Positions 1-64,000 of a DNA stretch of 64,000 nt are shown here, in pieces. The position numbers and the translations under genes are program-made. Origin of the DNA: Macrostomum lignano (lineage: Eukaryota); assembly GCA_002269645.1 (NCBI GenBank), contig NIVC01000277.1:1-64000 (forward strand), written 5' to 3'. The notes below the pieces were generated by a model. That model was not told the origin of the DNA, ran no database searches, and saw only the letters and a program-made list of their open reading frames with translations. Every line of letters starts with the position of its first letter. Position 1 is the first letter of the stretch.

Positions 1-2946
1 CCATCATCAGACTGTCGTGTCGCCTGCCAGAACGCGTGCACATGAAAGCGAATGATGAGCCTGAACATGGTTGTAATAAAAATTGTAAACCATAGTTTTG
101 GCAATGTCCAGAATTGACGCGCCAATGATAATTGGCTTGTTAAGCAAAACTTGACGAGGAGATAGACTAACTCCGCCAAATTCTCGTTGTAAATGATAAC
201 ATCTAGGAAGCTTTCCATGCTGACATAGGACTCCAGCTTTGCAGCGTCGGTGCACATCTTGAAGCACAATCGGTCACGAACACGTTGCAGAAACTTGCCA
301 AACAAAGCATTGTTGAGTAGCTTGAACAGATCACGTTCAAATTCCGTCTTGGCTTCTATTCGTCGGCTAATGTTGCGCTCAATGTAAGAGCGTAATATTG
401 GCTTCTCGGTGAAACAGATGACGCGATAGACCCTTGTGACTCGCATCCCCAACTCGAGGTAAAGTCGCAATGCACGTGGTGCAACACATATTCGCGCTTG
501 TGCTCGACAGAACCGATGAGCTTGCGCGCAGGGCTCTTGAATGCCTTCACGTCTTGGTAACAGCTGGCAGAGGCATATCGCTCGGGTTCAGTTGTCGTTG
601 AAGTGCTGTCCAATCTTGCCGCATTTGATCCGTCAGCCGATCTTCTCTCACAATCTCGTGCCCAATCGCCAGGGAGGTCAGCAGTGCTATCGTGTAGAAA
701 CTCGGGATAATGCAGATCGACTGTGAAATAAGCTCCTCGCTCCTCAGAACAAAACTTCGTCAGCCAGTCTAGCATTTGACTCTTCACTTGCGGATTTTCG
801 AGGTAATAGCCTGCGCCGGGGGTGTTATCGCATGGTATGCGATTCACATCTCGAGCAGAAAGCCAACGAAAGTTCTTGTATGGTAGAGGTTGTACCATGC
901 AACTAGAATAGAGCGAGTTTGCATCCAAGTAAACCAAAAAGGTGTTTTCTGGTGCATTTGCCCTCAGGCTCGCAAAGTTGCCCTCGTCCCTGTCCAAATC
1001 TTGACGAATGAGCGAAACCAACGAGTTATTTGCTGTGGTTACGTGACGTGTCCCAAAGCTGAAACCGCCGCGCACAGAGCTCTCAATTTCAGCATACATG
1101 GCTGTATCAGTGAAGAGTTGAATTGGCTCTGCAAGTTGAAGCAAGCACGCCGCCAGGCTGTACATTGGAGAGCCAAGAAAATGAGCGGGATCAATTTGAT
1201 ACTCTTTGATTGCATTATTTCTGAAATTTTCAAACACGTCGCAGAGCAAAAGCACATCCAATCGCAGGTAGGCAGTAGTGTAGTCACGCAGAGTGTGGCA
1301 GCCGAATTCCTCCCAGCTGGCCTTGGCTCGAGCGTAGTCGGCGTCAGAGCAATGCTGCATTGTTAGTCTATTGAAAAACCTCTCCTTTGCTGGCAGAGAT
1401 TTTACGCTGTCCAATTTGTCCATTCGATCAAGGAACGAATAGGGAAAAACTCCCTTCTGCTGCAACGTCTCCGGTCGTAGTCTCGGGTATTGCTCCAATA
1501 GTTTGCTTGTGTGCACCAGCTGAGAAGGGAGCAGGCGTTCAGCTAGACTTGCTAGGCTAGTTGGTAAATACGCAAAAGTGTCCTTGAAGCAGATTTCAAA
1601 CCAAACGTGGTGCTGCCCATCAGCAGCAGGCAGCTTGAACTTGATAGAGAACGTTTTGAATCGCTCGCGATTTTCAGGCAAAACATAAAGTTTAACTTCT
1701 TCACCGGAAAAGGTTTCGTAAACTTGGCGAACAATAAACTTGCCATCATATGCCGACAGGTTGTGAAAATAGACCAACAGCCGGTGGCGATTCAAGCTCA
1801 ATTTGCGATTGCAGCTGACACACAAAACTCCCCTAGGCAGGCCAGTAAGATGATCGTGATCCAGGACTTGGCGTTCATCAAGCTCAAAAACGCGATTACA
1901 TAGCTGACAATGCTTGTGGCGCCGCTTCTCGACACGGTCCGTCAGATGAAGATATTTTTTAAGCAAAGGAACATATGTTTCATCCTTGGCGTGTCGGTAG
2001 ATCTCGCTTGCTAGCTGGCGGAGCTTGATCAAAAACAGCCCAATGCAATCATCTCCACCGTTGGGCCGCGAATAGATAACCGAACAGGCGGACCTTTCGC
2101 CATATAGTGAAGGCAGCCGGCTTTCAACTCCGGGACAGGCCACCACCCGATAACCGATGCAAAGCGGTTTGTGGATCTCGCGAATCTTTTGAGAGGCTCC
2201 CACATGTGGAGCGCTGGCGTCCGGCGGTGCACATAGGCATTCCATGTCGGCATAAACTACGTACAGCGCCGGCAGCCTTGCAGCATGTTCGGTAAACTCA
2301 AGACTAGCATTCTCCGGCAGAGGCATCTTCTCAATTGGCGGCCTGCGCACCTCCCGTATTTGTGGCAGCGGCTCGGACATCCAGCGGAGCGAGGACTGGC
2401 TCTCGCACCCTCCGATGCATTGGTGCTCGTTCAGAATGAAGTCCCATGATATTTTTTCCGAAAACGGAGCCAGGCAAGTTGGGCAGACACGCCGTCGTTT
2501 GCCTCGGCAGCTTAGAAGTGAGTTCAAATTACGAACAGGCATGTAGTGGCCCAGCTTGAATTTGCCATATGGTGGGATGAACAAACAGTTTGCCATGAAG
2601 CGGGCTGTCTCCGGGGAACAGTGGCGCGAAAAGTAATGCACGGCAGTCTTTGCTTCGTAATCCAAACGAATACACGCAAACTTAACCCTGGATTTTTGTT
2701 CAAAAATTTAATATATGAGCATTTGGCATGTCTCGCTGGTCCGACTTGTAATTTAGTTCCAAAATCCAATTCTCGCAAATGTTCTGTATAGCTGCTCTTC
2801 AAATGAGGACGCTTCACTTGGGCATAAAAGATGCTTGCTACGATTGCATACTTGAAGCAGTTAGGCTGCCGATTATTGTTTGGCTTCAAAAATATTACGG
2901 CTCCTCTCTTGCATCCAACCGACAACGGGACTTTAAATGTTCTGGC

Positions 2947-2981
<35 letters not shown>

Positions 2982-3750
2982 TACCACCGCCCAGCTGTTG
3001 CTCTGCCGCTGTGGAATTCCTACTGCCCGGGTTGTAGCTTGGCCGAGAACGAGACTTCCTATAGGGGCATAGCATCAGGTCAAGCTGTTCAATGCTGTCA
3101 TACTTCCAACCACTGCCACGTTTCTGGAAGCTGTCAATTTTGCTTGTCACTTCGGTGATTGCACGCATAAACCAGTCGTTGAAACTCTCCTCAGACAGTT
3201 CGCCAGTACCGGTGCCCTCTTTATCCAGTGAAATTGTAACCATGTGACTGTTGAAATATGCAGAGATTATTTCAGTTGCTGGTGAATTTAAAGCGCCTGT
3301 TGAGAGATCGGGGTGTTGCCGCAAATCCGCCAGCATCCGAAACAGCTTCACCTTGACATGCAGACATGTTCTCAACATCAGTCCTTTTTGTAAAGTCATA
3401 TTGAAAAGCCAATAGATTGGGGCGCGCAGCTGGTTCAGCTTGTCGGCAGGTAGAAGGTCGTCGGTGGTGGCGGATGTTTGCGATGGAGATTCAGCGGAAT
3501 TAGGAACAAACTGCAGAAAGTTGGCTCGCCCCTGATGCGCACTTTCTTCCAGGTGAACAGACCAACCGTCTGGTGGGTGCGCCTGAAGCTCCTCGAATGG
3601 CCCCTCCAACAGTCGATCTGGCGCAAAGCATTCTCCATGCGAGTGAGCATGCAGCGCAGCCACATTGCGGAAGGTCTTTCGACAAACCAGGCAGCGAGCT
3701 CTTGGCTGGAATAACAATTTTTTTTTCTTTAAAAAACGTGCTTTTATCAT
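1..3750 (-). CDS. Protein-primed family B DNA polymerase (pPolB), Polinton type, about 6 single-base frameshifts, C-terminus beyond window
   Basis: Reassembled from ORFs 2524-3891, 356-2665, 7-267 and intervening frames; first ATG at 3750. Motifs: N-terminal C2H2 finger (CLVC..HAH), GSGW, OTU-like NCFKYAI...GHY, endonuclease VII-like DHDHLTGLPRGVLCVSCN, ExoII FHNLSAYD, KGVFPYSF, ExoIII YLRLDVLLLCDVFENFR, motif A YLDANSLY, motif B KLLNNALFGK (in a frame not shown in the track, about 290-325), motif C GDTDS (frameshifted, about 1-25). Confidence 0.95.
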
Positions 3751-3985
3751 GGTTAATATTAAACAAATAATGCAAGAATTTTGATGATTTTTAGGACTAA
3801 AATGCAGTATGGAATTAAAAAAGAACGAACGCGCTTTGATGGCATGGCCAACAAGTAGGGAATTCCCAACTTGTTCCTTGATGCTGGTCAAGGAATAATC
3901 GAATAATCAAGGGCCAACTGTTTTATTAAATCACATTTCAGATTGTCTTCATGTAGCAATTAAGGCGAGTCAAAACGCGAGTCAC

Positions 3986-4665
3986 TCAGCCAGAAGGATT
4001 AATAATCTTGCAAACTGTGTCCACAACATCCTCAAGAGTAGTCTCTGGCAGCACTCGGATCTTGTGCACAGTTTTGAAAAGAGCAAACTGTGCATGCAGC
4101 TCCTCCCGTAGTTGTTCAAGATAACTCAGTGTAATGTGCTGCTCCCCACCTCGGTTTCGCTGTTGAATGCGCTCCAGTGCAAGCTCGGGTGTGATGTCCA
4201 GATAGATTAGTGTGGCATCAGATTGAAAGCAGTTGGTAAACATTTCATACAACCGAATCATCAGATTCAGTTCAAAGTTAGTCAACCGATCCTGTTTGTA
4301 CAACAGATTTGAAAAGGCAATTCCGGATCGTAGGTGTCGGTCCATCACTATCAGATCAATCGGCTGGCGGCCCTCCTTCACCTCGTTTGTCGCAAATTGA
4401 ACTGCGGCCATGTCGCGTCCCATCAGCTCTTGGTACACCAACGTTTGAAAAGCAAATGCTGACAGTTCACCAGAATAAAACTTCTCCAGGGCGCCGCAAA
4501 AAGGACCCTCGCTGCGGCAAAAATTTGCACCGGCAGAAAATGAGCACGCTTCCTCCAGTTGTCTAGTCTTGATCGTAGTGCCAAATTATGCAGTACGGTG
4601 GATTTGCCCGCTCCCAACAGTCCTTCAAGGATGAAGACGCTCGGTGCAAAAACGATATTTGCCAT
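3986..4665 (-). CDS. Deoxynucleoside (thymidine) kinase, dNK family; one frameshift near 4515
   Basis: P-loop ILEGLLGAGKST; LEKFYSGELSAFAFQTLVY after the frame change; MDRH (ERS-equivalent); IYLDITPELALERIQQRNRGGE lid motif; YLEQL. Confidence 0.9.
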
Positions 4666-4674
4666 TTCAGATTA

Positions 4675-5283
4675 CTAGTTGTTGGATATAGGATCGATTG
4701 ACTGCAAGATATTATGCGTTGAATTAGGAATCGAAAGCTTTAAGTATGTTTCAATACATGATAAAATAGAGGAGAGTTCTTGGGCATTTGCTGGGCCCAT
4801 TATGACCAGCTTTTTTGAACAAAACAAATTTGCAAACAAACGTTTATTCCAGCTGCAGCGCAATCGCACGGCTTGAGGAAAAGTTTCTGCATCGTAGCTC
4901 ACAGTGAAACCAATGAAACATCCAATTCTTAATTTTAGCATAAAAAATCTGTCTGTTGCGCTATAAAATTCATATTCACCAACATATGTTGAGGTTTGAA
5001 TACGTATTGAATTAAAATCCAGCTTAAAAACAGAATTGTGAATTGCCAGGAGTGTGGATATTAATTTGAGATTTGATGCACATCGAAAAATTGTAATTTT
5101 TCCACCAGGATAGATTTGCATAGTATAGCCAGCACTCGTAGCAACTCTCAGCATAGAGGGTCGTCCAAAATAGAGTTTGCAATTGAATCCGCTTTTTAGC
5201 AGTTTTAGCTGAAGCTGAAATAAATCTAGTCCATCGGAACCGCTCAAATCCAGTTGTGCGCTCCCGACACTCTGAACAATTCT
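4675..5283 (-). CDS. Divergent TATA-box-binding-protein (TBP)-fold protein, both saddle repeats; no in-frame ATG at the N-terminus
   Basis: Repeat 1: RIVQSVGSAQL..LDL...TMQIYPGGKITI, compared with TBP IQNIVGS..LDL..TALIFASGKMVV. Repeat 2: FNSIRIQT...VSYDAETFPQAVRL...LFANLFCSKKLVIMGPANAQELSSILSCIETYL, compared with TBP FTDFKIQN..SYEPELFPGLIYRM..VLLIFVSGKIVLTGAK.REEIYQAFEAIYPVL. Confidence 0.8.
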   Translation of the reverse strand, partial: RIVQSVGSAQLDLSGSDGLDLFQLQLKLLKSGFNCKLYFGRPSMLRVATSAGYTMQIYPGGKITIFRCASNLKLISTLLAIHNSVFKLDFNSIRIQTSTYVGEYEFYSATDRFFMLKLRIGCFIGFTVSYDAETFPQAVRLRCSWNKRLFANLFCSKKLVIMGPANAQELSSILSCIETYLKLSIPNSTHNILQSIDPISNN

Positions 5284-5397
5284 CTGAAAATTTCAAACCA
5301 GAAATAAGTCTGAATAAGTCGTGGTAAGACAAAGAACTTGGTCATCAGTTTATTATAATAATAATAAGTCGGGTAGTTAGCAAAAGCGCTATTGCAG

Positions 5398-5733
5398 TCA
5401 GGCTAAATGTCTCGCGGATAGCAGTAGGTAGGCAGGCGAATTGCTAAAGATAAGCACTAAGGCGAGTAAACCAGCCTTGCAGTCTAAAAGCCAAGCAGCA
5501 GATTGACGAGAAGAAAAGCGATGTAAACGACGTAGAGCATCTAATGAAAATAACAATTTGCGTTTAAAAGGATAGGCTAGAAAACCCGAGCTATATGCTT
5601 TAAAACATGTGAGGAAGTTGAATCCAAGGCGAGCCGATCTATTTAAATGTTTACGAATATTCAGGTGCTCGTCCTTGCTACTAAAAATTTGCCAGAAATA
5701 GTTAAAGTTTATGATAGTGCGAGACGTCAGACA
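5398..5733 (-). CDS. Uncharacterised ORF of about 110 aa, absent from the ORF track
   Basis: The frame is open from 5772 to a TGA at 5398 (about 125 codons). TTTTCAG is followed by CATG near 5733 in an adjacent frame, so one frameshift is needed. It fills the gap between neighbouring genes of the compact element. Confidence 0.4.
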   Translation of the reverse strand, partial: CLTSRTIINFNYFWQIFSSKDEHLNIRKHLNRSARLGFNFLTCFKAYSSGFLAYPFKRKLLFSLDALRRLHRFSSRQSAAWLLDCKAGLLALVLIFSNSPAYLLLSARHLA

Positions 5734-5772
5734 TGCTGAAAAAGTCCTCGCAGCAATGACACCAGTTGGAGC

Positions 5773-6951
5773 TTAAGCGAACAGACTGCAATCCGAATCG
5801 GATGATCTGTTGCTCGAGGCTTCAGCTCCAGCTAGCTGCTTGGCGTACGAGAGATCCTTAGAGGCGACTCGCTTTCCCGGCTGAACCGTAGGCGAACTTA
5901 CGAGCTTCTTGACTGCCGGTACTTCAGCCCAGTCGGGATCGCTTGCTGGTCCACCTTTGCAAGCAGGCTGGTTCTTAGGAGCGCTCGCGGCAGGCCTTGG
6001 ACGTTTCGAATTCTTGCTTGGTGGCGGCGGTGGTGATGAGGTTCTCCTCTTCTTCTTCGGCGTGGTGCTGCTCTCACTTCGATTCTTGCCGGTGGCAGTG
6101 AGAAGACTTGGAGTAGGCAAACTTGAAATTTTCTCCTCGTTGCTATGTTCATGCACAATCCGATACTCGGACAGAGGTCCCTGCAGGTTCCCTATCAGGC
6201 CGGTAGTGTTTCCATCAGACAGCCACACCAGAGATCGGATGCAGGCGGCAAGTCGCCAGGCTGGCGCCCCCTTCGGAAGGTAGAGCGAAGTGATTTGCAC
6301 CGTGATCTGGTAGAGTCCGCTTCGCGCTGAAGTCTCGGGGCGAAACCTCTTGGATTGTGCGGCTGCCCTCGTTGGTGGAGAATGTTGTGCATGGATAGTT
6401 GGGCTTGATGCCGATCCAGGTAATTGGGTTGGCACCGCTCGCGTCAGGACTCTTAGTGAGTCTAATGAGCCCCATTCGGTCAGATTGCTGGTGAAGTGCC
6501 TTCTCGATCGACTTCTCGATCGCTCTGGAAAGAATATGACAGATAGCAACGTAAGAAAATTGCAGTAAACTTTAATTTCTAACCTGGGATGCGGTTCACA
6601 AACCAAAGAATAGGATTGTATTTACCTCAAAGTTGAAACCAGCTGAGGGCAAATGCCCTTGGCTTGAAAACCAAGTGCGATAGCTTCTCGTCCTTCGTTG
6701 ACCGAGTGTTCTGTGCCCGCACCGCTGTCTGTTCGGTGCAAACCGCGAAAGAGTAGAATCGGCTGTTGAGACTGCAGTAGAATCGGTAGTTTCTCGTGCT
6801 TGTCGCCCACCGGAGTCCAAGAGAGAGCGCGGAACTGACAGTTGTTGGCAAACTTGGGCGAAGAAGCTGGCTCGACATGGATTGTAGGCCGCGTCTCGGG
6901 TGAAACAAACTGCTGTGCGCTTAAGACTTCTTCTTTAGCGAAAAACGCCAT
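5773..6951 (-). CDS. Spliced gene; probable OB-fold single-stranded DNA-binding protein with a basic, NLS-bearing tail
   Basis: ORF 6622-6951 joins ORF 6215-6475 in frame across a GT-AG intron; one frameshift then leads into the 5773-6606 frame. Pattern ILLQSQQPILLFRG...IALGF...LRAIEKSI...GLYQITVQITSLYL...WRLAACIRSL resembles T7 gp2.5/large-DNA-virus SSBs. The tail contains PKKKRR. The product call is tentative. Confidence 0.5.
6525..6625 (-). other. 101-nt GT-AG spliceosomal intron
   Basis: Donor AG|GTAAAT at 6625, acceptor TTCTTTCCAG| at 6525. Removal gives the continuous frame STLR-AIEKSIEKALH. Confidence 0.7.
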
Positions 6952-10200: not shown

Positions 10201-11689
10201 GTCTGACCTTTTTGGCCACTTTAATTAGCCATTTATTGGCCAATTTTAGTGGCTGAATACAAGACATTTCTGGCCCTTCACTGGCTATTTATAACTACTC
10301 GTAGCAAACTCTTGACCAATTTTTTGACCACATTTAGCAGTAGAACTTAGAAAATTTCTACAATTTACCACCCAATGGAAAATCTTAACTTGCCCCTATT
10401 ATTGGGTAATATGCGCTTGGTAGCTATTTGGTAATTTGATGTCAGCAAGACATATAGCTTATTAATTGTATAGTTGCCCTAATATTGAGTGACATTTGCC
10501 TTCAATTTTAAAAATAGCAATCATCACACTACTGAAAATAGTATAATTGTTTATTAATGACTAAAAATTGACATGATAGCTTTATGCAAAAGGCATCCCA
10601 AAAGTACTTGATATAATGATTTCCTAATAGATATTGTTCTAGGGGAACTTTTGCCATTTGCAAATTCTCACTGTGCCACCAAGTTGTACTGGGTTTCTTT
10701 GTATTTCTCTAACCAAATTCTAGTCTAGGACTCCTTATATTATTGTAAAGCAGTCCTGGTAGCAGTGTCAAGGGGCAAACACTGATCTAATAAATTCTTT
10801 TAACTACTAAATTTCTACTTTTATCCAGTCCTAAATTAGGCTACCTTGGAATGAAGTTGCCCAACTAGGTGACTGCTTTCTCCCTTTACTGTCCTCTTAG
10901 TTTCTCTTCTCTCTTTTCTGTCAGTTTACTAATTTAAAATGCCTTGCTTTTAGACTGAATCAAAGAAATGGCAGGCGAAAACTAAAAGGCCTAAAAATGT
11001 TTGTGTTTATAATATTCAAAGGGAGGTTGGGGTGTGTGAGTCAGTTAAGTCAAGTTAAGTCAAGTCAGTCAAGTTAAGTTTAAACAAAAATATTAGCAGT
11101 TTAAAAAAAATCTTCAAAAATAAATTCTTTGATTATAACAAAAGGAAATTCCCCAATTATAGCAAATAATTTTCTCCTATCTATAACAAAAATTATTCCA
11201 CTTTATTTAAACAAAAAATAAGTAACTAGGCAGAGTTTGGCAGAAATTCAAAATAATGTCTTTATGAACATTAAAAAATATAGGGCTGCCTCAACTGGCT
11301 TCTCTTATACATATTTATGAATAAACTAGTGAGTAAATATGTCAAGAAAGTGTAGGCAAAAGTGCAAAATAACTAATACATGGTGAAATCAATATAGGCA
11401 CAAAACATAGATAAAAATTTGGCAATAGTGCAGGCAAATGTGGTTTGAGTATATAGAACATGTACAGCACACTATGATAATTGCAAACAAGAGGTAATAT
11501 GGTACTGTAAGTAGTGCAAACAAATATAGCAGAATGAGTATTAGACAGATTATGATTCCAAACAAGATATAGTAAGTAATGCAAACAAGGTAATTGTAAT
11601 ATAGCAAAATGAATATTAAACACACTATGATACATTGCAAGCAATGTACACTTAGCAGCATTGAAAAGTTTCTACCCTAGCACGCGAAG

Positions 11690-12230: not shown

Positions 12231-13598
12231 CTAGATTGGTGAGCAATTCTTGCTTTCGGTGATCTTCATCAATGCCTTCATTCTCGCATCGCTGATCAAA
12301 TGTGGTGAGCTAGACTCTAATATCTTGGCTGGGGACATCTGGATCTTCTGGATCTTAATATGTCTGAGGGGGACTAATTCTAAACGGTTACGGAGCTCTT
12401 TGGCTAGGAGTCCTAGGGCACCATTAATTCCTGCTGCGGCTATTGTACTTTGGGGATAGGGATGGGGATTTAAAGCTTGGGGTTTGATTGCGCATTTCAC
12501 CAGATTCTGATCCTTTACCGGTTGCTACCAATTTGTGTTAGGCATTCTGGGTCTGAGGATAACTTATGCGCCTCATCAAATATTAGTTTTGGGTGAGCAC
12601 TGCTTAATCCATGATGAGAGACTAGGTACCTGAAGCGATTTTCTTCTGCCACTGTTATTTGTCAGAATGATGGCAACTTAGCAATTTTGTGGCAAAATAG
12701 TCCCTCTCCTTTTACACCCCACTTCTATAAATGACTACTCTGAGGTGGACTTTTCATGATGAAACTATAGGTTTCTACCACAAGCCTCGTTTTTATAGGA
12801 TGCCCTGACAGTCCAGAAATTACTATTACATTTTGTTAACAATCGTGGCATTTTGTGATTGTAGCCCCTCATTCGTAGGTAGCAGGATGAGAGCTTGTGC
12901 AGGGATAAATATAATGCCTCATTGAGAGCAGCCTTAAGTACTACTGATTGTCTTAAGTACTACCCTTGGTGCGCTAGGCGTCTGATAATTGTCAATTCTA
13001 ACCCTTTCCTCAGTTATTAAGCATTATAGTCGATTGTTCAGATGGTACTTGTGACGGTTTGAGCTTTTGTAGATCGTTTCGTGTGCCGTCGTGAAAGTCT
13101 TCACAAAGTAATTATTGGTATTTGATTATTTTATTTAATTGTATATCTGCACGTATTGTTTGACACGTTAAGTAGATTAAGTTTACACTCTTTTGTTTAA
13201 ATCTTTATACTCCAATTTCAAATAGCTATAAAAACGTACTGAATTTCGTTCCAAGCTGGTTGTCTGGTTGTCTGGTTGGTCGCTCGGTCGTCGCTCTTGA
13301 GTCTTGGCTTTGTACTGGCTCTAATACTTTTAACAGATTAAATACATTGAATAGTTCGACAGTATTTCGACAGTATTTCGACAGCTCCTTGTAATTCGCC
13401 TAGTTCACTACTACTTATTCACTACTTGTAAATCCCGATAGACCGCTACACAACTCATCAACGTCAGCAAAAGAAAAGTAGGCCTACAACTTCGTCACAT
13501 ACTCTTCAGTGGAGTGTTTCCTGAGCCAGTTAGAATTTTCATTCGATTGTTTAAATGAATGCATGAGGGGGCTTTTGGGACAATTTTTTAACGTCCTC

Positions 13599-13798
13599 CA
13601 TAATCCTAAATCCATCCATATTATCCCCGACAAAATCAGAAAAAAGGGGACGCACTTGCTCCGAAAACTTCGAACATAATCCCATTAAATCCATCCATAT
13701 TATGTCTGACAGAATCAGAAGAAAGGGGACGCACTTGCTCCGAAAACTTCGAACATAATCCTCCTAAATCCATCCATATTATCCCTGACAGAATCAGA
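13599..13798. repeat. Tandem repeat, 76-79 bp unit, about 2.5 copies
   Basis: cataatcc..taaatccatccatattat...ggggacgcacttgctccgaaaacttcgaa repeated at 13599, 13675 and 13754. Confidence 0.85.
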
Positions 13799-14319
13799 GC
13801 ATAACAGGTGTCCACTGTCACCTGGACTAATCTACTGTCATCCACCCATAGCATCTTCGAAACAATCAGAAAATAACCTGCATTCTTCTCCCCATATTCA
13901 ATTCGCAACGCGAAACCAGATCCCTAAGACTTTAAATCATCAATGCAGGGTTCTATCAATATCTAGATGTAACACAAGTAGGCACACAGGAGTATGTCAA
14001 GCAAGCAAAGCAAGAATAGATGGCTTATAAACTGTATTGAGAAACTGTAACAAAGAGCAAACAAAAAGAAACGAAAACTGTGAGCACAATTCAGAAATGT
14101 CTGGCAAGAAAAGAAAGAATAAAGCCATAAAACTAAATGAATCTCACTTTTGGCAGGCCAAGTTACGTTAGTCTGGCTATACGCAAAATTGTTAGTGGGC
14201 ACCACGCATCAAAATCAATGCTTCCATCAATGCTTTAATGTTTTGTTTGTCTCAGCTTGATTGATCTGGTTTGTTAGCATCTTGGACATTCAATTGAAAA
14301 ACCTGTTGATCTCGCGGAC

Positions 14320-15724: not shown

Positions 15725-16534
15725 ATATATGCATATCAAGGGAAGCAGTAGTCATGGCCTTGGAAACATTGGGGGATATCAAAGTCTCGCAGGAAAGGGA
15801 ATAGCGGTGTGATTTTATCTCTGTAGGGTATCAGTGTGACTCAAAAATCTTGGGCTAAAAAAAGTGTCACCTCCTATGGAATACCTGCGATCAGCCCGGA
15901 CCTGAATTCTGCGGTAACCCCTGGTGTCTCCCTGGCTGGGATTCGATCCCAACGTGTCTTTTGACTCTCCCCACTGCATTGTAGACCCGGTAGTAACTGC
16001 TTTGGTTGCATTTGGGCTGGTGTAGTGGCTTGAAATAGTAGATCCCATCGTTTTTCTATTGATAGTGGAGTTCAGTGAGTATTGGAATGGTGTATTGGAA
16101 GTTTGGTGGTCCCCAGTGAACTCGTCATTTTTCCTGCTGCATTCTCCTCCTTTAGTAATTTCTCCCCCCTGACGCCAGTCTGACAGGGGAGGTGAGTGTG
16201 CCAATCAGCCCGACCCGGTAGAACGGTGCTCCTGCCCGACCTGTCAGCCTGCCCCAGGAAGGCGCTATTGCGCAACTCTTTTCACCTCTGGCCACTGCAG
16301 CCCATTAAGTGCTCAGACGCAGTGCTGCATGCACTCCCCTAATGTAAGGCCCCGGTACATAAAGTGCCACCCCAGTGCCCCGCAAGGTCAATAAGACGGG
16401 TTGACTCTCTGGCTGCTTGGAATAACCTAGATGGAGCTACCGCTGTCCTCTGGTAGAACCGGGCGTTCAAGTACAGTAAAGTGGAGAGGCTGACAACAGC
16501 GACTAAAATTCGACTACAAACAGCGACTACAATA

Positions 16535-17312
16535 GAACTAGTTGAACTAGTGGGACATCGCAGAAGTGCCCCAAAGAAAGAACTAGTTGAACTAGTGGGA
16601 CATCGCAGAAGTGCGCCAAAGAAAGAACTAGTTGAACTAGTGGGACATCGCAGAAGTGCGCCAAAGAAAGAGCTAGTTGAACTAGTGGGACATCGCAGAA
16701 GTGCGCCAAAGAATATATCAATTACTTAAACTGGTGGGACGTCGCAGAAGTGCGCCAAAAAAACAATTACCTTGAACTAGTGGGACATCGCAGACGTGCG
16801 CCAAAGAAAGAGCTAGTTGAACTAGTGGGACATCGCAGAAGTGCGCCAAAGAAAGAGCTAGTTGAACTAGTGGGACATCGCAGAAGTGCGCCAAAGAATA
16901 TATCAATTACTTAAACTGGTGGGACGTCGCAGAAGTGCGCCAAAAAAACAATTACCTTGAACTAGTGGGACATCGCAGACGTGCGCCAAAGAAAGAGCTA
17001 GTTGAACTAGTGGGACATCGCAGAAGTGCGCCAAAGAAAGAGCTAGTTGAACTAGTGGGACATCGCAGAAGTGCGCCAAAGAATATATCAATTACTTAAA
17101 CTGGTGGGACGTCGCAGAAGTGCGCCAAAAAAACAATTACCTTGAACTAGTGGGACATCGCAGACGTGCGCCAAAGAAAGAGCTAGTTGAACTAGTGGGA
17201 CATCGCAGAAGTGCGCCAAAGAATATATCAATTACTTAAACTGGTGGGACGTCGCAGAAGTGCGCCAAAAAAACAATTACCTTGAACTAGTGGGACATCG
17301 CAGACGTGTGCG
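16535..17312. repeat. Higher-order tandem array: 17 monomers of 45-49 bp organised in 185-bp units
   Basis: Core gtgggac(a/g)tcgcaga(a/c)gtgcgccaaa at spacings 45,45,45,49,46,45,45,49,46,45,45,49,46,45,49,46. Confidence 0.95.
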
Positions 17313-18340
17313 ACCAAAAGTTAAGCAGTTTAGAAACCAATTGTACTTGGTACACGGCGTCCTGCAATTGTACGCGGCGTCCTGCAACGACGTAGCATAT
17401 TTGCCGAGAACACCGGCTGTTTCAGCAGAACTTGAAGGCTTAGCACCGACCTGTGCGTACTCGAGTTGGCACTCCAACTCGCGTGTTCTATTGACTGCAC
17501 TTTCCCATTTCTCTTTGTACGAATTGCGCTCAAATTCAGCGTCTTCAAGTCTGTGGGCCAGGTCTTCGATCTGCCGTTGCAGGCTTTCCCTGTAGCCGTC
17601 GGCAGTCTGCTGCGCCAACTCGGCGGATGTCCGGAGGTTTTAAAACCTCATGCCTGAGCGCCTGGCAGGTGGCGCAACCGTAAGGTATGTTAATGCCACC
17701 CGGCCTCTGTACCGCTTGACAGGCACTGGCACCGGCTTCTGCAGCCGCCTTTGTGCGGTATGGCCCTTTACATACTCGCACGCGGTAGGCTTTACTATTG
17801 GAGGTCTTTCCCGGTCTAATGGTGACCTCATCGTCAATTGACAGTTGGCTCGGGTCTACTGAGCCGTCAGTAAGAACACACTTGTCGGCATAGACTCCAA
17901 GCCGACCGCCGTCTTCCGGCGCATATTCGAATACCCAGTAGCGGTATGCTGCTGGGCCACCGGAAACTAGCTTTTTACCGGCGCCAGTCGCAAAGGTGCT
18001 AGAAGCGCCAGCGGCGGTAAAAGCGCCAGCGGCGGTAGAAGCGCCAGCGGCAGTAGAAGCGCCAGCGGCGGTAGAAGCGACAGCGGCGGTAGAAGCGCCA
18101 GCGGGGGTAGAAGCGACAGCGGGGGTAGAAGCGCCAGCGGCGGTAAAAGCGCCAGCGGCGGCAGTAGCGCTAGCAGCGGCGGAGGCTAAGTTGGACTTGC
18201 TGTTGCGCTTTTTTACCGCTTTTTCTTTGTTTTGCTCCGTCTCGATCGGCCTCTTGTGCGCCCCTTTTGCTGCCTTTCTCTTTTGGCTTTGTACTAGCGT
18301 CTTTTGGTTTGGGCATTTTAGTTTGTAGTATTGTGCTGCA
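17277..18340 (-). CDS. Transposon-accessory-like protein (basic N-terminus, AAGAST repeats, coiled coil), frameshifted
   Basis: Open frame from about 18340 to 17545 lacking an early start codon (acceptor-like TTTGCAG at about 18336), containing YWVFEYAPEDGGRLGVYADKCV and CATC; continues in ORF 17277-17618 (coiled coil). Style resembles the accessory ORFs at 47805 and 54923. Confidence 0.5.
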
Positions 18341-18693
18341 AATATAATGAGGATTTAGTTTAATCTGGTTGTTACATAAAGTACAGACATCAGTATAAAA
18401 AGCGTGCAGGTGCTAGTTTAGTGTTTGTCAGTCTTTTAGTTAGTGTATTAGAAGTGCTAAGATTAAAGGTGAATGGTACATTTGAAATGAATAGAAAACG
18501 GTTTGACAGATGTATGTGTATACATCTGATATGCATATTGCAGACGTGCGGTTTAAAATACGGTTAGTTAGTTATTTCATTATGATGAAATAGCGCAGTC
18601 GTGTGCGACAAAAAAATGACAAAACACAGCAGATGTGCGGTTTAAAATACGGTTAGTAATTTAATGATATAGCGCAGTCGTTCATCACTTTGT

Positions 18694-19440
18694 CTAATAA
18701 TTGCGAGGTTCCGGACCTCTTAGTTGTAGAAGTATGCGACGACGCCTACCAACTTTCATCGCATCGATTGGCGCCTCCAGGGGTGTGTCCGGCATTTCTA
18801 TGCGGAAAAAAATTGGGGTCGTAGTTGGGCCTCGGTTGGTTGGACCGATGACGGCCAGCCGCCTGCAGGCGTTTCCTCTTTGTCTCCGGCGATAGGTTGG
18901 CAAACCAACCCTCGCATTGAACGCAGCAGTGCGCTTCGAGCTGCATGCGCTCATCCCGCTTTCGAGCCTTAAAAACACAGTTTTGCGGAATCCTCGCCTC
19001 AGGCAGTCGGTTATAGTCTGCTATGAAACTGTCCGACAACACCATTTGAGCCGGTCCGGTTCGAGTGGCTTCAGTAGACATTGCCAAAGGCCCGTCACGC
19101 GACTGCTGCTCATCCTCGCTGTCCAGCTGCGTGGTCGGCTGATTCAGCTGACGTCGACTCGCCTGGTTGTCGGCGTACCAGTTATGCAGACTGTCGGGGC
19201 CCATAGTCTCCGATTCGCAGACCTGCGCACAGTCACGGACTTCGTCACTTGAGTGCTGGGCACTACATCCGAACGAATGATAGCCCGATGGAAGCGCACA
19301 TTGCGGCTGGTATCAAAGACCGGTGAACCCGGTCGTCCGCTACGCAAGCGCTCCACCTCCGCTCTTAAGGCCCAGTTCTCGTGAACCAGTGCTTTGCAGA
19401 TTTCGCATGTTGCGGTGTGAGACCAGTGATCATCCGACAT
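18694..19440 (-). CDS. Compact CtIP/Sae2/Ctp1/COM1-like protein (about 240 aa), intronless, two frameshifts
   Basis: C-terminal VFKARKRDERMQLEAHCCVQCEGWFANLSPETKRKRLQAAGRHRSNQPRPNYDPNFF-RIEMPDTP matches the Sae2/CtIP signature (RKKEER..L.G..C..C..YY.....SRHR...PPNTPENFWEVGFPST). N-terminal CEIC plus coiled coil. Confidence 0.85.
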
Positions 19441-19914
19441 AGAAGATACAGAAACTTAGACAGGTACGGAGCTGCAAGGCGTTAAGTTTAAACTAACGGT
19501 CAGAATGAAAGCAACAGCTGCGTACGCAAATGGGCTAAAGGGAAGAAGAACACGTGAAGGACGTATGGGGACCATTTTTCGAACTTCGATTTAGTGCAGG
19601 GGTTGTAAACGAATATCGATTCGGCCTACTAGTCTGCATATTTCCTGTACACTTATATTATTTACTCTAAAAGAAAGCAACACACACTGTAGCTGTGACC
19701 AAAGTAAAAGTAAAAAGTAAAAAGTGACTAAACTAGGCGCCGCATAACTTGCCGCAACCTTGCGCCCACCGGGCTGTATATTATTATTATTATTATTATT
19801 TTAATTGGCTGGCCGTTGGACTACGAGATGTGACCAAAAATGTAACGTGAATGTCTTCTTAAAGCTCAGCTTACTATTTTTCATTATAGAGGTCATATTG
19901 CGAAGTGCTAAATT

Positions 19915-20880
19915 CTAAATTCTCGTTAACTTTTGGTCACACCTTGTATGCTTTGATCTAGTAACTTTCGTATCAAATTCACCTACGCATGTCCCAGTAT
20001 AGCAGTAAAATCGCCAAATTGGCGTCCGCCATGCCGAAAGCGCAGTCCGGTCGGCGGTGCAGGAGTGCAGCCATGGTGGTGAACAGTCGCCGCAGGCGTG
20101 TAGATCGACCACCACGCGGCCTATCACGGTGAGCGCTCAGCGGCTCGGGCTCCGGCAGGACGCCAGCGGTGTAGGCGGCCTTCCAAAAGCTGGCCTCCGC
20201 CCGCGACATTTCCCGATACCACGCCGCTTTGCCGTCACACACACTACGGCGACCGGCGGCCCGTTGGCGGACCGTTGCACCGCTTCGCCGGACTCCAGTA
20301 GAGTCCGACAATACCGGTCGCACATGTTGTGTAGGCATTGGCTCATCGCCTTTTGCGCCTCAGCGGGCCTGTCGCCATGACTGACTCTTTTTGACCTCTC
20401 TTGCGCAACGTACGCTATCATTGTCGTGAACACAATGCGGCAGCTGTGTATCTTAGTGGGCTCCTCGGCCCGTGCCGGTAGTCCCTTGGACACTCTTTGC
20501 AGCATGTCAATCACCGACGCAGCTTTGTCTTCCGCATTTTTGGACGCCATGGCGATCCAGTCTGCTGGCCAGTCATAGCCATTGGCGCACAATGGTGCGC
20601 ACGATGCGCAAACAGTGGCTACCGTACTCACTGCTGCGCCGGCTGGCGGTTGCGCAGGTGCACAGCTAACGGCCGGTTGTTTACCCGCGGGCGACTGGGC
20701 TGCCGCACTCGCTGCTGCGCCGGCTGGCGGTTGCGCAGGTGCACAGCTAACGGCTGGTTGTTTACCCGCGGCGGCTGGGCTGCCGCACTCGCTGCTGCGC
20801 CGGCTGGCGGTTGCGCAGGTGCACAGCTAACGGCCGGTTGTTTACCCGCAGGCGGCTGGGCTGCCGTACTCCCTGCAACT
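19915..20880 (-). CDS. Uncharacterised frameshifted gene with 27-aa repeats and a possibly BEN-like helical domain
   Basis: Overlapping ORFs 20137-20631, 19979-20338 and 19915-20127; three 80-81 bp repeats at 20631-20870. Confidence 0.4.
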
Positions 20881-27845: not shown

Positions 27846-28400
27846 TTAATTATTTATATAAAGTATTCGTAATTCGTCTACGGGACCATACGTATACCAT
27901 CGACAATTGGGACATCTTTTCGCGTTAGTTTCTTCATTATGCACACGTACAAAACATTTTAAACAAAATATTTGTCCACATTTCAAGTTACGTGGACCTC
28001 TAAGTTGATCCAAACAGACATCACATCTGAGGCCCGTTGAAGAGGTTGTCTGTTCCAACTCTTCTTGAGTACGAATCTCGTCTTCTTTTTTCTGTATCTT
28101 CTCTTTCAGCTTGAGATAGACCTTCAAGTTTTAAGAAATGACAACGATAATAAAAAAGTAGACAAAAATAAAACAAAACGAATTTCGAGCCTTACCTGTA
28201 TGGACTTGAAAACATCCGTGTTCCTTTTAAATGATTGTTCCATATCATAATTATTTATGATATCGTTGACATCCCAGTTCTTTAGATCACTTTTTCAATG
28301 TAATATTCTAGTTTTTTCGAAACGGCTTCTGTTGTGCCCGAGTATATTTGCACCGATAAGCACTCTCACTCTCGGTCAATGTGCCAGGCACTGCACTCCT
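27846..28400 (-). CDS. C-terminal RING finger protein, spliced, one frameshift
   Basis: CDVC..LKCGQIFCLKC..CPNCR (C3HC4 spacing with His replaced by Gln). Intron 28122-28195 (CAG|GTAAG..TTGAAG|) joins KSIQ-VYLKL in frame. Confidence 0.8.
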
Positions 28401-28799: not shown

Positions 28800-30547
28800 T
28801 CACGAGGATCATTAGCGTCGCCGCAGGAATCCGGAGACGCTTTTGCTTAAGATTTACGACTTCGTTGGGTAGCTGTGCAGCTTTTTTTCTGTGCCACAAG
28901 AGGCAGCACGAGCCCTGTTGCTGAACTTCTGCCGTATTGCCAATATTTTTTTGAAATTCGCTGCTTAAGACGAACGACTTTTCGTGCCGATTTTAAGCGT
29001 ACGTTGAATTCTTAACCGCCAAAAACTGGCCAAGTGGTATATCAAAGTCGACCAGATTTGGAAATTATCCGATGAAAGCAGAAAATAACTGCATTTCTGC
29101 GTTGGTCAAATGCGGTTTACTGCTGTTGACATATTTGGCCGTAATTTCAGCCATAGTAGGCCTTAAAATTGCATTAACAATGGATTGGTCCAACTTCAAG
29201 TCAGAGGCAGCCTCCTTTGCGTTGGCCAATTTAATCCTCGCACTGTAAGTGTAGATAGTTATCATTAAACCTCATCAACAGGTTGAGTGGCCTTGAAATC
29301 AGGTGGAGCTGGATGAAGAGGATCCTGCACTTGGTAGGGTGGTTGAGGTGGTTTGATATCTTCTGCAGATTATCCACTATCATTGCCTGATATTCTTGTT
29401 TTAATTTCATTCCGTTATCGATTTTCAGCAATATCGCGAACTGCACGAGGGTCGGCAAATGTTTATTCAGTTGACACAGAAGTTAACTTCCATACATGCA
29501 TGCACATTCAAATGGGCGTGGCTTAGAAGAATGAAACCCCTCCACTGGAATGATATATGCTGTAGAGATCGGATTATCTTTTGTGATTTATTGCGCAATC
29601 CCAAGCTCACACGCGGGGTCAGTAACCCCTGCAAATGCAGATCCCTTGCAAGAGATGATAATGATGAAAATAGCTTTGAATAAAGATAGGTTAACAGATG
29701 CCAGGTGCAAGGCTTCTTTGCACCAAGAAAGATAGCAAAAATTAAGAAGTTTTCTGGCTGAAAACGCAAAAACGGTGGAAGATTCAAAATTTGAGCTTGA
29801 ACAGGCCACAAAGAAGAGGGAGAATTAGAGTACAAGCTACAGCCATCAGTGGAGAGATGCAAAAAGATTGTAATAACTTGGGCGGTATCATAAATTATCG
29901 GACAATTTTTAAGTACGTCTGTCTTGATTGCTTGGCTTTGGCAAAAATCAACCATGTACTGAAATAGAGACTCGATGATAATTTGAAGCTGGAAGCCTAC
30001 ATCAGAGTGTGCAGTATAATTTAAAGGAGCAGCGCAACACCTTTGACTAGCATGAGAAGAACGACGCTGACATGTAGAAATGGAACATGTTTCAAGTAGG
30101 GAGAAATGGCTGCAAGCCATCACAAGACGATCCATGACTCTTTTCACCATTCTCATGGACAGCGAACAAGCAACAAAGTTGGAAGCGAAGAAAGATTTCA
30201 ATATTATGTCCATAGTAGCGAGAGGAATGTCCCTATTAACTATCAGGAACACGAAAAAACACGCACAAAAACTCTTTGCGTGCTAAGTCTTTCAAACAGT
30301 CGATAGAGAGAATAGCGTCGGACTCTAGGCTTCCCTCTTCACCATGAAAAAGCCCAGATTCATCTAGTTCATCGCATTGCGAGTCCAGAACTAGGACGCT
30401 CGGATCTGGCTGCTCATTGTGGCGAGCCTCTCCAGAGTTAGACGCCGTACTAGAGCAGGCGGCCTCAGCAGGTTCCTCATCAAAGTGCTCCAGCTCGAAA
30501 TCATCATAAAGGCACATGAATGCAACCGCTTCAAAGAACTCAGCCAT
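28800..30547 (-). mobile_element. EnSpm/CACTA (tnp2-type) transposase, degraded
   Basis: LHLSTDGCSLYSNSPSSLWPVQAQILNLPPFLRFQPENFLIFAIFLGAKKP; TDPA; acidic N-terminus; multiple frameshifts and an internal deletion. Confidence 0.85.
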
Positions 30548-31137
30548 TGAGGGTTGAAGTGCTGCAAATGGTGTTTAAAACAGATTTTACTATTAACAGG
30601 TAGAACAGATATTTTCAGAGAGAATAAAAATTAGAGCACCATAAAAATGCACGATAGAATATTAAATTATTTTGTTATTTTAGCATCACAAAACCTATAG
30701 GTCTTAACATATTTTTAACGGACAAAGAGAAACAAATGAATCAATGTGATTGAGCATATAATGAAAAATGTGCACATGATGAATGCCTCTAACGTTTATT
30801 GATTATTGAGCTAATGTCATCAAAGTAATAAATAATGCCATTAACCAAACAAGAAAAAATAATGTGAATAACCAAACAAGAATAAATAATGTTATTAACC
30901 AAACAAGAATAAATAATGTAATTAACAAAACAAGGACAAAAATGCTATTAATGGTTATCTAAGGACACATTTGGCTAGTAATAGGCTATAGGAAATCGTG
31001 GACCTATTCAGCTTGCCCTAGTATCACTCTTGAACTGTGATGACTTGTGGCTTATTATAGTTTTAATAATTTTTTTCATCATCACTCACTGCTATTGATA
31101 TACAATACCAAGCAAAAGTCTGTTCTTTTGAAACATA

Positions 31138-32345: not shown

Positions 32346-33026
32346 TTACTCCTCATCAGAGTCCAGCTTCGGCAACTGCACTGCATCCTGCCGGTGCAGA
32401 GGCCAAGGAAGCTTCTGCTTGCTGCCACGACCGCTGTTGTCGCTTCCAGTACCCTGTAGACCGGTAGCCGCACGGATCTGATACCAAATCGGATCCTGCC
32501 TCAGGTCGCTATCTTGCGGAGGAATGCGCCCGATAGATGATGATGCCGCAGGTAAAGACCTCTCACTTGTAGCAATGAGTAGTGTCTCCCTTTCATCAGC
32601 ATCCTCCCCACTTGGTTGACGCTCTGCATGTCGCCCGCTTCCAGCTGATACTCTTCTTCTGATTTGCCCTTCAGCTAGTCTTCAATCCAGCTGCCCTTTT
32701 TCCAAAGTTCGAGCCACAGTGCAGGAGTTGCGTCTCAGCAAGTCTTCTGTGCAGTACTCGGGCATTCTCTTGAGCCAAAATTTTCCGCCGGTCACAATAA
32801 CTAGCTTATCGAATCCAAGCTTCACCGTTACGTTGTGCCGATGGACAGCAGAATGTACGAGATGTCGTTTGAGCTGCTTCAGTTTTTCCCATTTGTAGAG
32901 ATTCAAGTTGAAGCCAGGGATGCAGGGCTTCAAGCCTCCTTCAACGGGATAAAAACGCCGAATAGCGAGGAAGCGATGCCCTTCGTAGTCCTGAACTATG
33001 ATTTTATATCCGTCGCACAAATCCAT
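32346..33026 (-). CDS. PC4/Sub1-domain protein (ssDNA-binding fold), intronless, one frameshift
   Basis: DLCDGYKIIVQDYEGHRFLAIRRFYPVEGGLKPCIPGFNLNLYKWEKLKQ matches PC4 ([38 protein letters not shown]). A partial second repeat follows, then a low-complexity tail ending at TAA 32346 in another frame. TATATAAG at 33098-33105. Confidence 0.85.
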
Positions 33027-33329
33027 GTCTTTAGAGTTATTTAGATATTGATCAGAATAGCTGAAGTCGTTTAGCTATGCATTAGAAAAACTGGCCTCTT
33101 ATATATTATCGGAGAGGAGTGAGTGGCTGTTTGATACAGCTGCTTGTGGGAGCTACGTTGTTGGAATAATATAGAACCCTGATCATTTTATTCTTTTCAA
33201 TCCAAACACGTGCAACGTGTAAGTTAATGCAATTATCCCAATACTCCGCTTATAATAATATTCTTTATCAATCGAAAAAAACAGACACAAGTTCTGGTTT
33301 TGGGCTCATTAATTATGTCAGATATGCAT

Positions 33330-34109: not shown

Positions 34110-34851
34110 AGTGCACCAACTTTACTGGCTCAGCTTTCAAGAAGTTCTGTAACCTGTTTGGCATCCGGCATACAACGACAACACCCTACAATCCGGCTTC
34201 TAACGGGCAAGTCGAGAACCTCAACAAGCGGTTAAAGAGTGTCCTCACCTGCCTCCTTGAGCGCAACCATAACGACTGGGACACCTTTCTCCCAGCCTGT
34301 CTGATGGCTCTCCGGTGACAGTTTTCACGCCTCACTACTTGGTGTTTGGTCTTGACTTCCGACTTCCAATCGACAACGCGATCAAGAAGCTGCCCGAGTA
34401 TCCCGATCTGCCGGAGTATGTCAATGACTTCCAGCGCTGTTTAGACGAAGCGACTGAGCTAGCCAAAGAACGCCTGCATCTGCATCTGCAGCTGCGCGAC
34501 GAGCACTATTCGAACCTGCCCGCCGCCAAGAAGCTCAAACCTGGTGACCTGGTTTTTCTCAACAACCCGGTGCTCGAACCGTACGAGGCGGCGAAGTTTC
34601 ATCGACCTCGCAAAGCGCTGTACGAGGTAGTCGAACCCAAGGGCGAGGTCGTCTACAAGATTCGCCGTAGATTGCTAAATCCGCGGGCCAGGCGCGACGA
34701 GCTAGTGGTCCATCGCCGGAATCTGCTGCTCGTACCTGATGCCGACTACCAGCTGACTTCAGACCCGGAGGTCGACAAGGCCAAGAAGCGCCGCAGGTCG
34801 ACTGAGGACCCGGATGGTGCAGAACCCGTGACCCTGACACCGAATTTCTGA
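34110..34851 (+). mobile_element. Gypsy integrase, C-terminal half
   Basis: TNFTGSAFKKFCNLFGIRHTTTTPYNPASNGQVENLNKRLK..WDTFLP..TPHYLVFG..KPGDLV..YKI..VVHRRNL. Confidence 0.9.
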
Positions 34852-62092: not shown

Positions 62093-62149
62093 CACCTTGC
62101 AGAAATAATAAGAATGAGACTAAGAACTATTGAAAAGAATCCGGGACCG
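62093..62149 (+). other. 2A-like ribosome-skipping motif (LRTIEKNPG/P)
   Basis: IEKNPGP at 62129-62149, upstream of the APE domain; D of the D(V/I)ExNPGP consensus is replaced by T. Confidence 0.65.
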
Positions 62150-63572: not shown

Positions 63573-64000
63573 CCCGCTGGAAAATGGTGCCTCAGCGCAA
63601 GCGTGATTTTGGCGTTTTTTAAGCAGAGAAGGCGAGTTTTGGGTGTGCAGAGCGTGCTTTGGGCTGGCTGAGTGTCAGTTAGGCGTAAAATTGGGGTGGT
63701 TGGTGGGGGGAGAGAAAAACGCCAAACCCGCTTAACCAGCTAATAAACGCCTGGGCAACTTAGGCAGCTAATTTTACGCGCAACCAGCTGGAAAGACGCC
63801 TAGGCAGCTAAGTTTACGGCCATGTAGGAAAGTACGCTTGGGCCGCCGAAATTACGCTCTGCCCGCCCAAATGACGCTTTGGCTGCTCTGACAGCCAATT
63901 TTACGCTCAACCTACTGAAGTGACGCTTAGACAGCTAAGCTTACGCCCAACCAGTTGGAATGACGCCTAGCCAGCTAAGTTTACGCCAACGGGATCATGC
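63573..64000. mobile_element. Terminus and subterminal repeats of another probable EnSpm/CACTA element
   Basis: Begins CCCGCTGG where RTE homology stops; repeated gacgcctag.cagctaagtttacg units; TACGCCCAACC is shared with 44014. Confidence 0.55.

Follow-up and report, generated by a model that had tools for sequence, protein, structure and literature searches.

A divergent, compact CtIP-like gene copy in a transposon-rich stretch of flatworm DNA

CtIP is normally a single-copy gene, and its product is an essential regulator of the choice between end joining and homologous recombination. A short CtIP-like gene lying among transposon remains raises the question as to whether it is the host gene itself, the cargo of a mobile element, a dead copy, or a second CtIP that has been kept because it works. 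The gene considered here lies at 19440-18694 on the minus strand of a 64-kb stretch of DNA (the window, to which all coordinates refer unless another locus is named), and its source is probably a highly regenerative flatworm with hidden polyploidy. A first-pass annotation had read the gene as an intronless, minimal CtIP captured by a CACTA transposon. The explanation that we favor, giving it about an even chance of being right, is a divergent, old and selectively maintained compact paralogue of macrostomid CtIP in a transposon-rich region. The copy is best read as neither the syntenic host CtIP nor demonstrably the cargo of a transposon.

Homology to CtIP and Sae2

Homology searches were run on an uncorrected frame of 188 codons (19312-18749, minus strand), so that our own repair of the reading frame could not bias them. 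Against a database of 1.84 billion representative proteins, phmmer returned 15 matches. The best was Macrostomum lignano BOX15_Mlig004387 (E 4.9e-17, 47% identity), and the remaining matches were CtIP/RBBP8 proteins of wasps, beetles, nemerteans, nematodes and vertebrates. The Pfam domain SAE2 (PF08573) was present in 8 of the 10 best phmmer matches scanned, 3 of which also carried CtIP_N. The same uncorrected frame, compared by hhalign with a profile of 14 CtIPs from outside Macrostomum, scored a probability of 98.3% (E 2.1e-14), and tblastn with M. lignano CtIP found 56.6% identity over 19024-18806.

The conserved residues agree with these scores. In an alignment of 10 sequences, which itself includes the frame-corrected product of the window gene, that product keeps the family residue in all eight invariant columns, among them both cysteines of the CxxC motif and the H-R of RHR. 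The two motifs stand in the spacing that is conserved in CtIP, Sae2 and Ctp1. As judged from these alignments, the homology of the predicted C-terminal domain to that of CtIP/Sae2 is real and far beyond chance; the phmmer and hhalign results bear out the domain as the first-pass annotation had described it.

A search with the Pfam SAE2 hidden Markov model gave a more mixed answer: the frame-corrected product does match (18.4 bits, E 0.0046), but it does not reach the gathering cut-off of 19.8 bits. The model is weak for this lineage, because the genuine CtIP of M. lignano also has no Pfam match at E ≤ 0.01. A word-indexed homologue search with the corrected product yielded zero matches, because the product has no 5-mer in common even with M. 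lignano CtIP; when the 10-sequence alignment was used, the search was swamped by low-complexity words and recovered beetle CtIPs only. The PDB sequence search gave nothing relevant to the CtIP-like product, and an Rfam scan of the window gave no matches.

No second CtIP-like locus was found in the 64-kb window. Weak tblastn matches at 50.2-50.65 kb were discarded as reflecting a chance "CGRHR" only. No CtIP relatives were found in IMG/VR, and the sole match among JGI metagenome contigs, in an unrelated frame of a bacterial contig with 73% GC, was rejected as spurious.

Reading frames of the CtIP-like gene

The CtIP-like sequence is assembled as three pieces over two frames, together within 747 nucleotides (nt) of the minus strand. 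The pieces, the motifs of the Sae2-like domain and the two frame breaks are as follows.

19440-19147, minus strand: piece 1, frame A; ATG at 19440-19438, 98 codons, stop at 19146-19144
19312-18749, minus strand: piece 2, frame B; 188 codons from stop to stop, stop at 18748-18746; Sae2/CtIP C-terminal core
19020-18697, minus strand: piece 3, frame A reopened; stop at 18696-18694
18805-18694, minus strand: conserved tail of piece 3, RIEMPDTPLEAPIDAMKVGRRRRILLQLRGPEPRNY, with its stop codon, from the alignment to M. lignano CtIP
18925-18914, minus strand: CVQC, the CxxC motif of the Sae2-like domain; C172 and C175 in invariant columns
18853-18845, minus strand: RHR motif; H197 and R198 invariant, R196 nearly invariant
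Somewhere in 19312-19147, minus strand: first frame break, A to B, placed by the overlap of the frames
18812-18806, minus strand: second frame break, B to A, in a run of seven T; one T surplus relative to the conserved protein

The first-pass annotation had placed both motifs exactly, CVQC at 18925-18914 and RHR at 18853-18845. Its intronless open reading frame (ORF) of about 240 amino acids (aa) does not exist as a single frame: two breaks interrupt the coding sequence, and a product of about 247 aa, with no in-frame stop in its ~247 codons, is reached only by switching frame twice. The core residues of piece 2 read ADYNRLP...CCVQCEGWF...GRHR...PNFF.

The second break can be located to a single base. 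Dropping one T from the T7 run lets the sequence align with M. lignano CtIP, free of gaps, right up to the end of the protein (NFFRIEMPDTPLEAPIDAMKVGRRRR in one, NFFAIEMPPTPEPAPTQCMKFGKRRH in the other), and the residues over the break read NFFRIEMPDTP in the window and NFFAIEMPPTP in M. lignano. The first break leaves more room, being compatible with one lacking nucleotide, with two extra nucleotides or with a short intron of length 3n+2, for example a GT..AG intron of 32 nt at 19222-19191. Microintrons have been reported in flatworms including M. lignano (PMC6530080). However, the frame at this break could be restored by any of 61 GT..AG pairs, 20-120 nt long and none of them with a strong donor, so that no particular intron is supported and a microintron was rejected as evidence for the break. 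Programmed frameshifting was also rejected, since one short gene would need a -1 and then a +1 shift.

Frame breaks are not confined to this gene. A virus-like block at the left end of the window, described below, includes genes for a family B DNA polymerase (PolB) and a deoxynucleoside kinase (dNK). Compared with intact M. lignano homologues, the window's PolB has three single-base frame switches (2662-2689, 476-500 and 174-180), two of which are a base missing from a short run of G or C, and dNK has one, at about 4500. PolB, dNK and the two breaks of the CtIP copy make six single-base frameshifts with zero nonsense codons over the ~1,345 codons counted. The probability of seeing no stops under neutral decay ranges from 0.006 to 0.28, depending on the ratio of indels to substitutions. 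This pattern leans towards residual assembly indels without being conclusive, and indels of that kind would affect every ORF call in the window. The breaks in the CtIP copy itself would be either assembly indels or a very recent inactivation. By contrast, a neighboring gene that we call gene X has a true in-frame stop in the copy next to the CtIP-like gene (copy A), and the transposase-like ORFs of the window are full of stops.

Comparison with the M. lignano host gene

Five M. lignano loci, 105 kb in total, were compared with the window. M. lignano CtIP (BOX15_Mlig004387g1/g2; PAA88737.1 and PAA54340.1) is present at two homeologous loci, each with acetyl-CoA synthetase upstream and EMP24/GP25L downstream, and in both it has three exons, with introns of about 1.07 and 0.75 kb. 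Translated fragments of these loci found no acetyl-CoA synthetase or EMP24 homologue in the 64-kb window, the CtIP core being the sole match; there is therefore no synteny in either flank of the window copy (18 kb and 45 kb). Both of the ~1-kb introns are absent from the window copy. The copy thus shares neither the neighbors nor the intron positions of a syntenic orthologue. The first-pass annotation had named such an orthologue as the finding that would overturn its proposal. The host arrangement was indeed found in M. lignano, but the window copy, lacking that synteny, is probably not the syntenic host CtIP gene.

Despite this, the two proteins are close. Across the last ~100 residues, the window copy matches M. 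lignano CtIP better than any other sequence, and the reverse also holds, at 55% identity (the next closest stand at 36% and 42%), and estimates over the C-terminal domain range from 55 to 57%. They have in common a Gly before RHR (GRHR), NFF in place of FW, IEMPxTP, and MKxG+RR. Given their mutual closeness and these shared derived states, the copy traces back to the CtIP lineage of macrostomids and not to a foreign source. Outside this domain they differ: M. lignano CtIP has at least 481 aa encoded in three exons, against ~247 aa and no long intron in the window copy, and it has an N-terminal and a central region to which the window copy cannot be aligned.

Over 103 aligned codons, the proportion of synonymous differences (pS) is 0.71, which is saturated, that of nonsynonymous differences (pN) is 0.31, and the ratio of nonsynonymous to synonymous rates (dN/dS) is about 0.19. 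At the nucleotide level the CtIP core matches M. lignano over 75 nt only, at 74.7% identity. Two non-coding interspersed repeats of the window also match M. lignano DNA, both in the locus that we call L003. The repeat at 13557-13923, which has 79-nt internal tandem units, is 89% identical to it and the repeat at 40709-40877 is 82% identical; the L003 counterparts of these two short, sharply bounded repeats lie at 11104-11387 and 12824-12981. Within M. lignano, copies of the interspersed repeats are 83-86% identical to one another, a similar range. On this evidence, and on the PolB comparison given below, M. lignano or a close relative is the most likely source of the window, at rather better than even odds, and the two repeats are the strongest pointer to it. 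Because the synonymous sites of the CtIP copy are saturated beside neutral repeats that are 82-89% identical, an old paralogue fits better than an orthologue. The low dN/dS, the lack of nonsense codons and the retained invariant residues also show that the domain has been under purifying selection for most of its time.

N-terminal region, phosphorylation sites and compact relatives

Piece 1 contains H-x2-H-x3-CEIC, with CEIC at 19407-19396, and after it a short stretch predicted to be helical; at most its first ~70 codons are compatible with the product. The first-pass annotation had seen an N-terminal CxxC coiled coil here. The CxxC is present, but nothing found ties it to CtIP: Pfam gave no CtIP_N (PF10482) match in the frame-corrected product, BLASTP of the N terminus to M. 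lignano CtIP gave E 6.6, and hhalign to CtIP N termini gave a probability of 0.2%. AlphaFold2 placed a helix at residues 13-33, with a mean predicted local distance difference test score (pLDDT) of 39. N-terminal CtIP homology is thus not detectable in the window copy at the level of sequence. A CtIP_N domain at the N terminus of the CtIP-like gene or of its downstream neighbor, which we call gene 2, was rejected, as nothing of the kind was detectable in either.

In CtIP, Ctp1 and Sae2, phosphorylation of a cyclin-dependent kinase (CDK) site in the C-terminal domain (human T847, yeast S267) promotes clipping by MRN/MRX via Nbs1 binding, and a second site is phosphorylated by ATM/ATR (PMC10706839). 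We infer from the alignment which columns correspond to human T847 and T859. In the putative CDK column, just before FW, the window copy has Y-D, M. lignano has Q-A and vertebrates have S-T-P; the window copy therefore lacks a canonical CDK site. In the putative column for phosphatidylinositol 3-kinase-related kinases (S/T-Q after FP), the window has a Thr only in the frame-corrected tail, and a P follows it (MPDTP; MPPTP in M. lignano). Regulation would differ from the textbook scheme, because there is no TP at the CDK position and TP instead of TQ at the second site.

In small size and in the C-terminal CxxC...RHR domain, the window copy resembles the compact members of the CtIP family, namely Ctp1, Sae2 and the proteins of Trichuris suis (210 aa) and Harmonia axyridis (367 aa). 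Schizosaccharomyces pombe Ctp1 and Saccharomyces cerevisiae Sae2 are small proteins in which a disordered linker joins a short helical region at the N terminus to the CxxC...RHR domain at the C terminus, and each is the only resection cofactor of its genome and is essential. Unlike them, the window copy is probably a second copy, lacks the canonical CDK TP site, and has an N-terminal oligomerization region that is putative.

Neighboring genes and transposon linkage

The first-pass annotation had placed the gene between CACTA-type accessory genes on the same strand. The features that bear on this claim are listed here.

22355-19982, minus strand: gene X copy A, upstream neighbor; multi-exon, with an in-frame stop and an 81-nt internal repeat
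47028-44904, minus strand: gene X copy B; 41-49% aa identity to copy A, with its own 57-nt internal tandem repeat
18315-17280, minus strand: gene 2, downstream neighbor; broken into at least three frames
18540-18681, plus strand: 3' flank of the CtIP-like gene; two copies of a unit of ~89 nt
29470-30574, minus strand: Transposase_21/DUF1258-like remnant (Pfam signal 29470-30282; 21 bits, cut-off 28.6), 10 kb from the gene
42047-44030, plus strand: decayed transposase-like ORF; no Pfam match even at E ≤ 10
49012-50373, plus strand: decayed transposase-like ORF; no Pfam match even at E ≤ 10

Neither gene X nor gene 2 has a Pfam domain or a transposon signature, which leaves the label of accessory genes without support. 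Copy B of gene X sits between the two decayed transposase-like ORFs and has no CtIP beside it. Gene 2 opens Lys-rich and continues with an Ala-rich 18-nt repeat, a small unassigned domain (YRYWVFEYAPEDGG...), CATCQALRHE and a coiled coil of ~60 aa. Its CxxCxALxHE echoes CEICKALVHE of the CtIP-copy N terminus; with 6 of 10 residues identical, the likeness is not significant.

The transposase-like ORFs show the motifs DG..L(Y/F).SS....WP and CDTPA...H..GC..C, and those at 42047-44030 and 49012-50373 are 24-37% identical to each other. We take the motif of these two (at 42-44 and 49-50.4 kb) to be tnp2-like, although Pfam does not see it. All three, including the Transposase_21-like remnant, are probably remains of CMC/tnp2-type transposases, and the window as a whole is a mosaic of mobile-element remains.

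No inverted repeats of 30 nt or longer were found in the window. The gene is spanned by four CACT...AGTG pairs with at least 13 of 16 positions matching; 20 shuffles gave 0-7 such pairs, with a mean of about 3. A target-site duplication accompanies none of the four. Neither mark of CACTA/CMC cargo, enclosing terminal inverted repeats with a duplication or a linked transposase or accessory gene, is found at this locus. With no inverted-repeat pair above chance, no duplication, the nearest transposase signal 10 kb off and the ORF itself broken, the proposed capture of a minimal CtIP by a CACTA transposon is unsupported; what connects the copy with transposons is proximity only.

Shorter repeats do surround the gene. 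The unit in its 3' flank includes CGCAGTCGTGTGCGACAAAAA (18594-18614), which recurs 3' of gene 2 (17299-17319). A 21-nt motif, CGCAG(A/T)CGTGTGCGAC(C/A)AAAA, thus lies just 3' of both the CtIP copy and gene 2 (2 matches, 0 expected). Its core is found again in a 45-nt tandem array at 16534-17308 (16.8 copies), and an inverted partial copy lies at 19926-19942, 5' of the CtIP copy. The motif may be either a 3' element common to the two genes or a subterminal repeat. A wider repeat system built on CGCAGNCGTGYGC(GAC)CAAAA occupies 16534-17319, 18540-18681 and 19822-19948, with an inverted pair resembling a hairpin on the 5' side of the CtIP copy.

Origin of the copy and alternative explanations

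An old, maintained paralogue could have arisen by duplication, most simply by retroposition of a spliced CtIP mRNA. The parental introns are absent, as is expected of a processed retrogene, and like retrogenes in general the copy lies at a new location, with new sequence upstream of it; the window also contains an AP-endonuclease ORF of the kind found in retroelements. Unlike typical retrogenes, it has no recognizable poly(A) tract or target-site duplication, and it may contain one short intron. The copy would have been retained because it is functional, as a minimal cofactor of the size of Ctp1 or Sae2 whose CxxC-RHR domain would contact DNA ends and MRN. It might serve as an alternative activator, for example one specific to the germline or to stem cells, or as a competitor of the full-length protein, and its regulation would have the rewired sites of the host gene in common.

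Several points weigh against this explanation. The 3' flank consists of two 89-nt units and has no A-rich tract, and a poly(A) remnant or target-site duplication was found nowhere around the copy. The dN/dS estimate is based on just 103 codons with dS saturated. As assembled, the gene cannot encode a full-length protein. No near-identical protein to the CtIP-like product was found among 5.8 billion clusters, and the exact sequences of both ATG ORFs had no match in the contig collection; the exact dNK ORF had none on record either. Finally, conserved cores of short interspersed nuclear elements (SINEs) can outlive deep splits, and for this reason the repeats leave room for the copy to be the orthologue of a more distant macrostomid.

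That last alternative, in which the host CtIP of a macrostomid distant from M. lignano has been compacted, has lost its introns and has moved, with a microintron and a homopolymer error as its two breaks, seems to us unlikely. It would agree with the single CtIP-like locus in the window, with M. lignano CtIP as the best match, with 55% identity in the core, which could suit a deep congeneric split, and with the frequency of compact CtIPs of 210-370 aa (Trichuris, 210 aa; a ladybird, 367 aa; a metagenome protein, 315 aa). Flatworm microintrons exist (PMC6530080), and the second break does fall in a T7 run; yet with 61 GT..AG pairs to choose from the microintron argument is empty. Synteny with either M. 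lignano locus is absent and both introns are missing. Moreover, repeats that are 82-89% identical to those of M. lignano imply a close relative, for which a pS of 0.71 is too high in an orthologue. Equally doubtful, in our view, is a functionless pseudogene, a processed or segmental CtIP copy now decaying through two genuine frameshifts. Two breaks within 750 nt, the disruption of gene 2 and of gene X copy A (in the case of gene X by a genuine in-frame stop) and the lack of any matching protein or called ORF on record all favor decay. Saturated synonymous sites with no nonsense codons and 8 of 8 invariant residues kept speak instead for a mostly constrained history, and frameshifts without stops occur in the window's PolB and dNK as well, which suggests assembly indels.

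That a CACTA/CMC transposon, or some other mobile or virus-like element, carries a minimal CtIP which it has captured, and which modulates repair at its excision or integration sites, is in our estimate improbable. In favor of this idea, the gene is off the host locus, intron-poor, compact and fast-evolving, the surrounding DNA is a patchwork of mobile elements, and the gene X family is repeated, its other copy lying between two Transposase_21-like remnants. The 21-nt motif 3' of the CtIP copy and gene 2, the 45-nt array and the inverted copy at 19926-19942 are loosely like subterminal repeats, and the PolB elements of M. lignano exchange nucleotide-metabolism cargo (dNK or dUTPase). On the other side, there is no enclosing pair of terminal inverted repeats and no target-site duplication, the neighbors are without transposon domains, and the nearest transposase-like ORF, 10 kb away, is sub-threshold and decayed. 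Copy B of gene X has no adjoining CtIP, the region shared with M. lignano PolB elements ends near 6.6 kb, and neither a second copy in the window nor a CtIP relative in IMG/VR was found. A more specific version, in which CGCAGNCGTGYGCGAC-type repeats at 16.5-19.95 kb bound a candidate mobile or virus-like unit with the CtIP copy, gene X and gene 2, its CtIP selected to bias the MRN-dependent processing of the element's DNA ends, has only a slim chance of being correct. Captured host genes in Pack-MULEs, CACTA elements and Helitrons, including Helitron-borne RPA, also place copies of repair genes away from home in transposon-rich DNA, as here; unlike those cases, no element boundaries, linked transposase or multiple copies could be shown for this locus. 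A literature search found no paper on a transposon-borne CtIP, which is not proof that none exists.

If the paralogue that we favor is real, a second, minimal and long-maintained CtIP would be a modest but useful lead to tissue-specific control of resection, for instance in stem cells or the germline. Since neither Macrostomum sequence has a canonical TP, the pair would also be an example of rewired CDK and ATM/ATR switches in the Sae2-like domain. Were the copy borne by an element, it would tie transposon or virus biology directly to MRN activation and would be the first transposon-borne resection activator. As it stands, the gene looks like an ordinary divergent paralogue, or possibly a pseudogene, of the known CtIP family.

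Other contents of the window

The virus-like block consists of five tightly packed genes on the minus strand at 1-6621 and runs off the left end of the window. It ends in a PolB of the protein-primed type with an Endonuclease VII domain (ORF 359-2707), the only close relatives of which are three M. lignano proteins at 53-57% identity. The PolB/dNK block is collinear with L003 and two further M. lignano loci, L004 and L005, at 30-57% aa identity. The divergence among the M. lignano PolB subfamilies (64-65% nt identity) is as great as that between each of them and the PolB of the window. The nucleotide-metabolism cargo varies: dNK is found in the window and in L005, dUTPase in L003, and neither in the shared part of L004. 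The portion of the block that lies within the window showed neither an integrase nor a capsid gene. Membership of the CtIP copy in this PolB/dNK element was considered and rejected, as the stretch collinear with the three M. lignano elements reaches only to about 6.6 kb.

Other ORFs in the window with recognizable domains or retroelement character are the following.

32685-33074, minus strand: PC4-like single-stranded DNA-binding ORF (22.1 bits, cut-off 25)
58520-58912, plus strand: RPA OB-fold-like ORF (26.7 bits, cut-off 27)
27849-28130, minus strand: C3HC4 RING finger, in an isolated ORF
62124-63668, plus strand: AP-endonuclease ORF of non-LTR (non-long terminal repeat) type, retroelement remains
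34273-34848, plus strand: integrase C-terminal fragment, retroelement remains
55447-55830, minus strand: ORF reading like a reverse-transcriptase fragment; no Pfam match

Taking the PC4-like, RPA-like and RING-finger ORFs, all of them isolated, together with the CtIP copy, PolB and dNK, domains of DNA metabolism are unusually dense for 64 kb of transposon-rich DNA.

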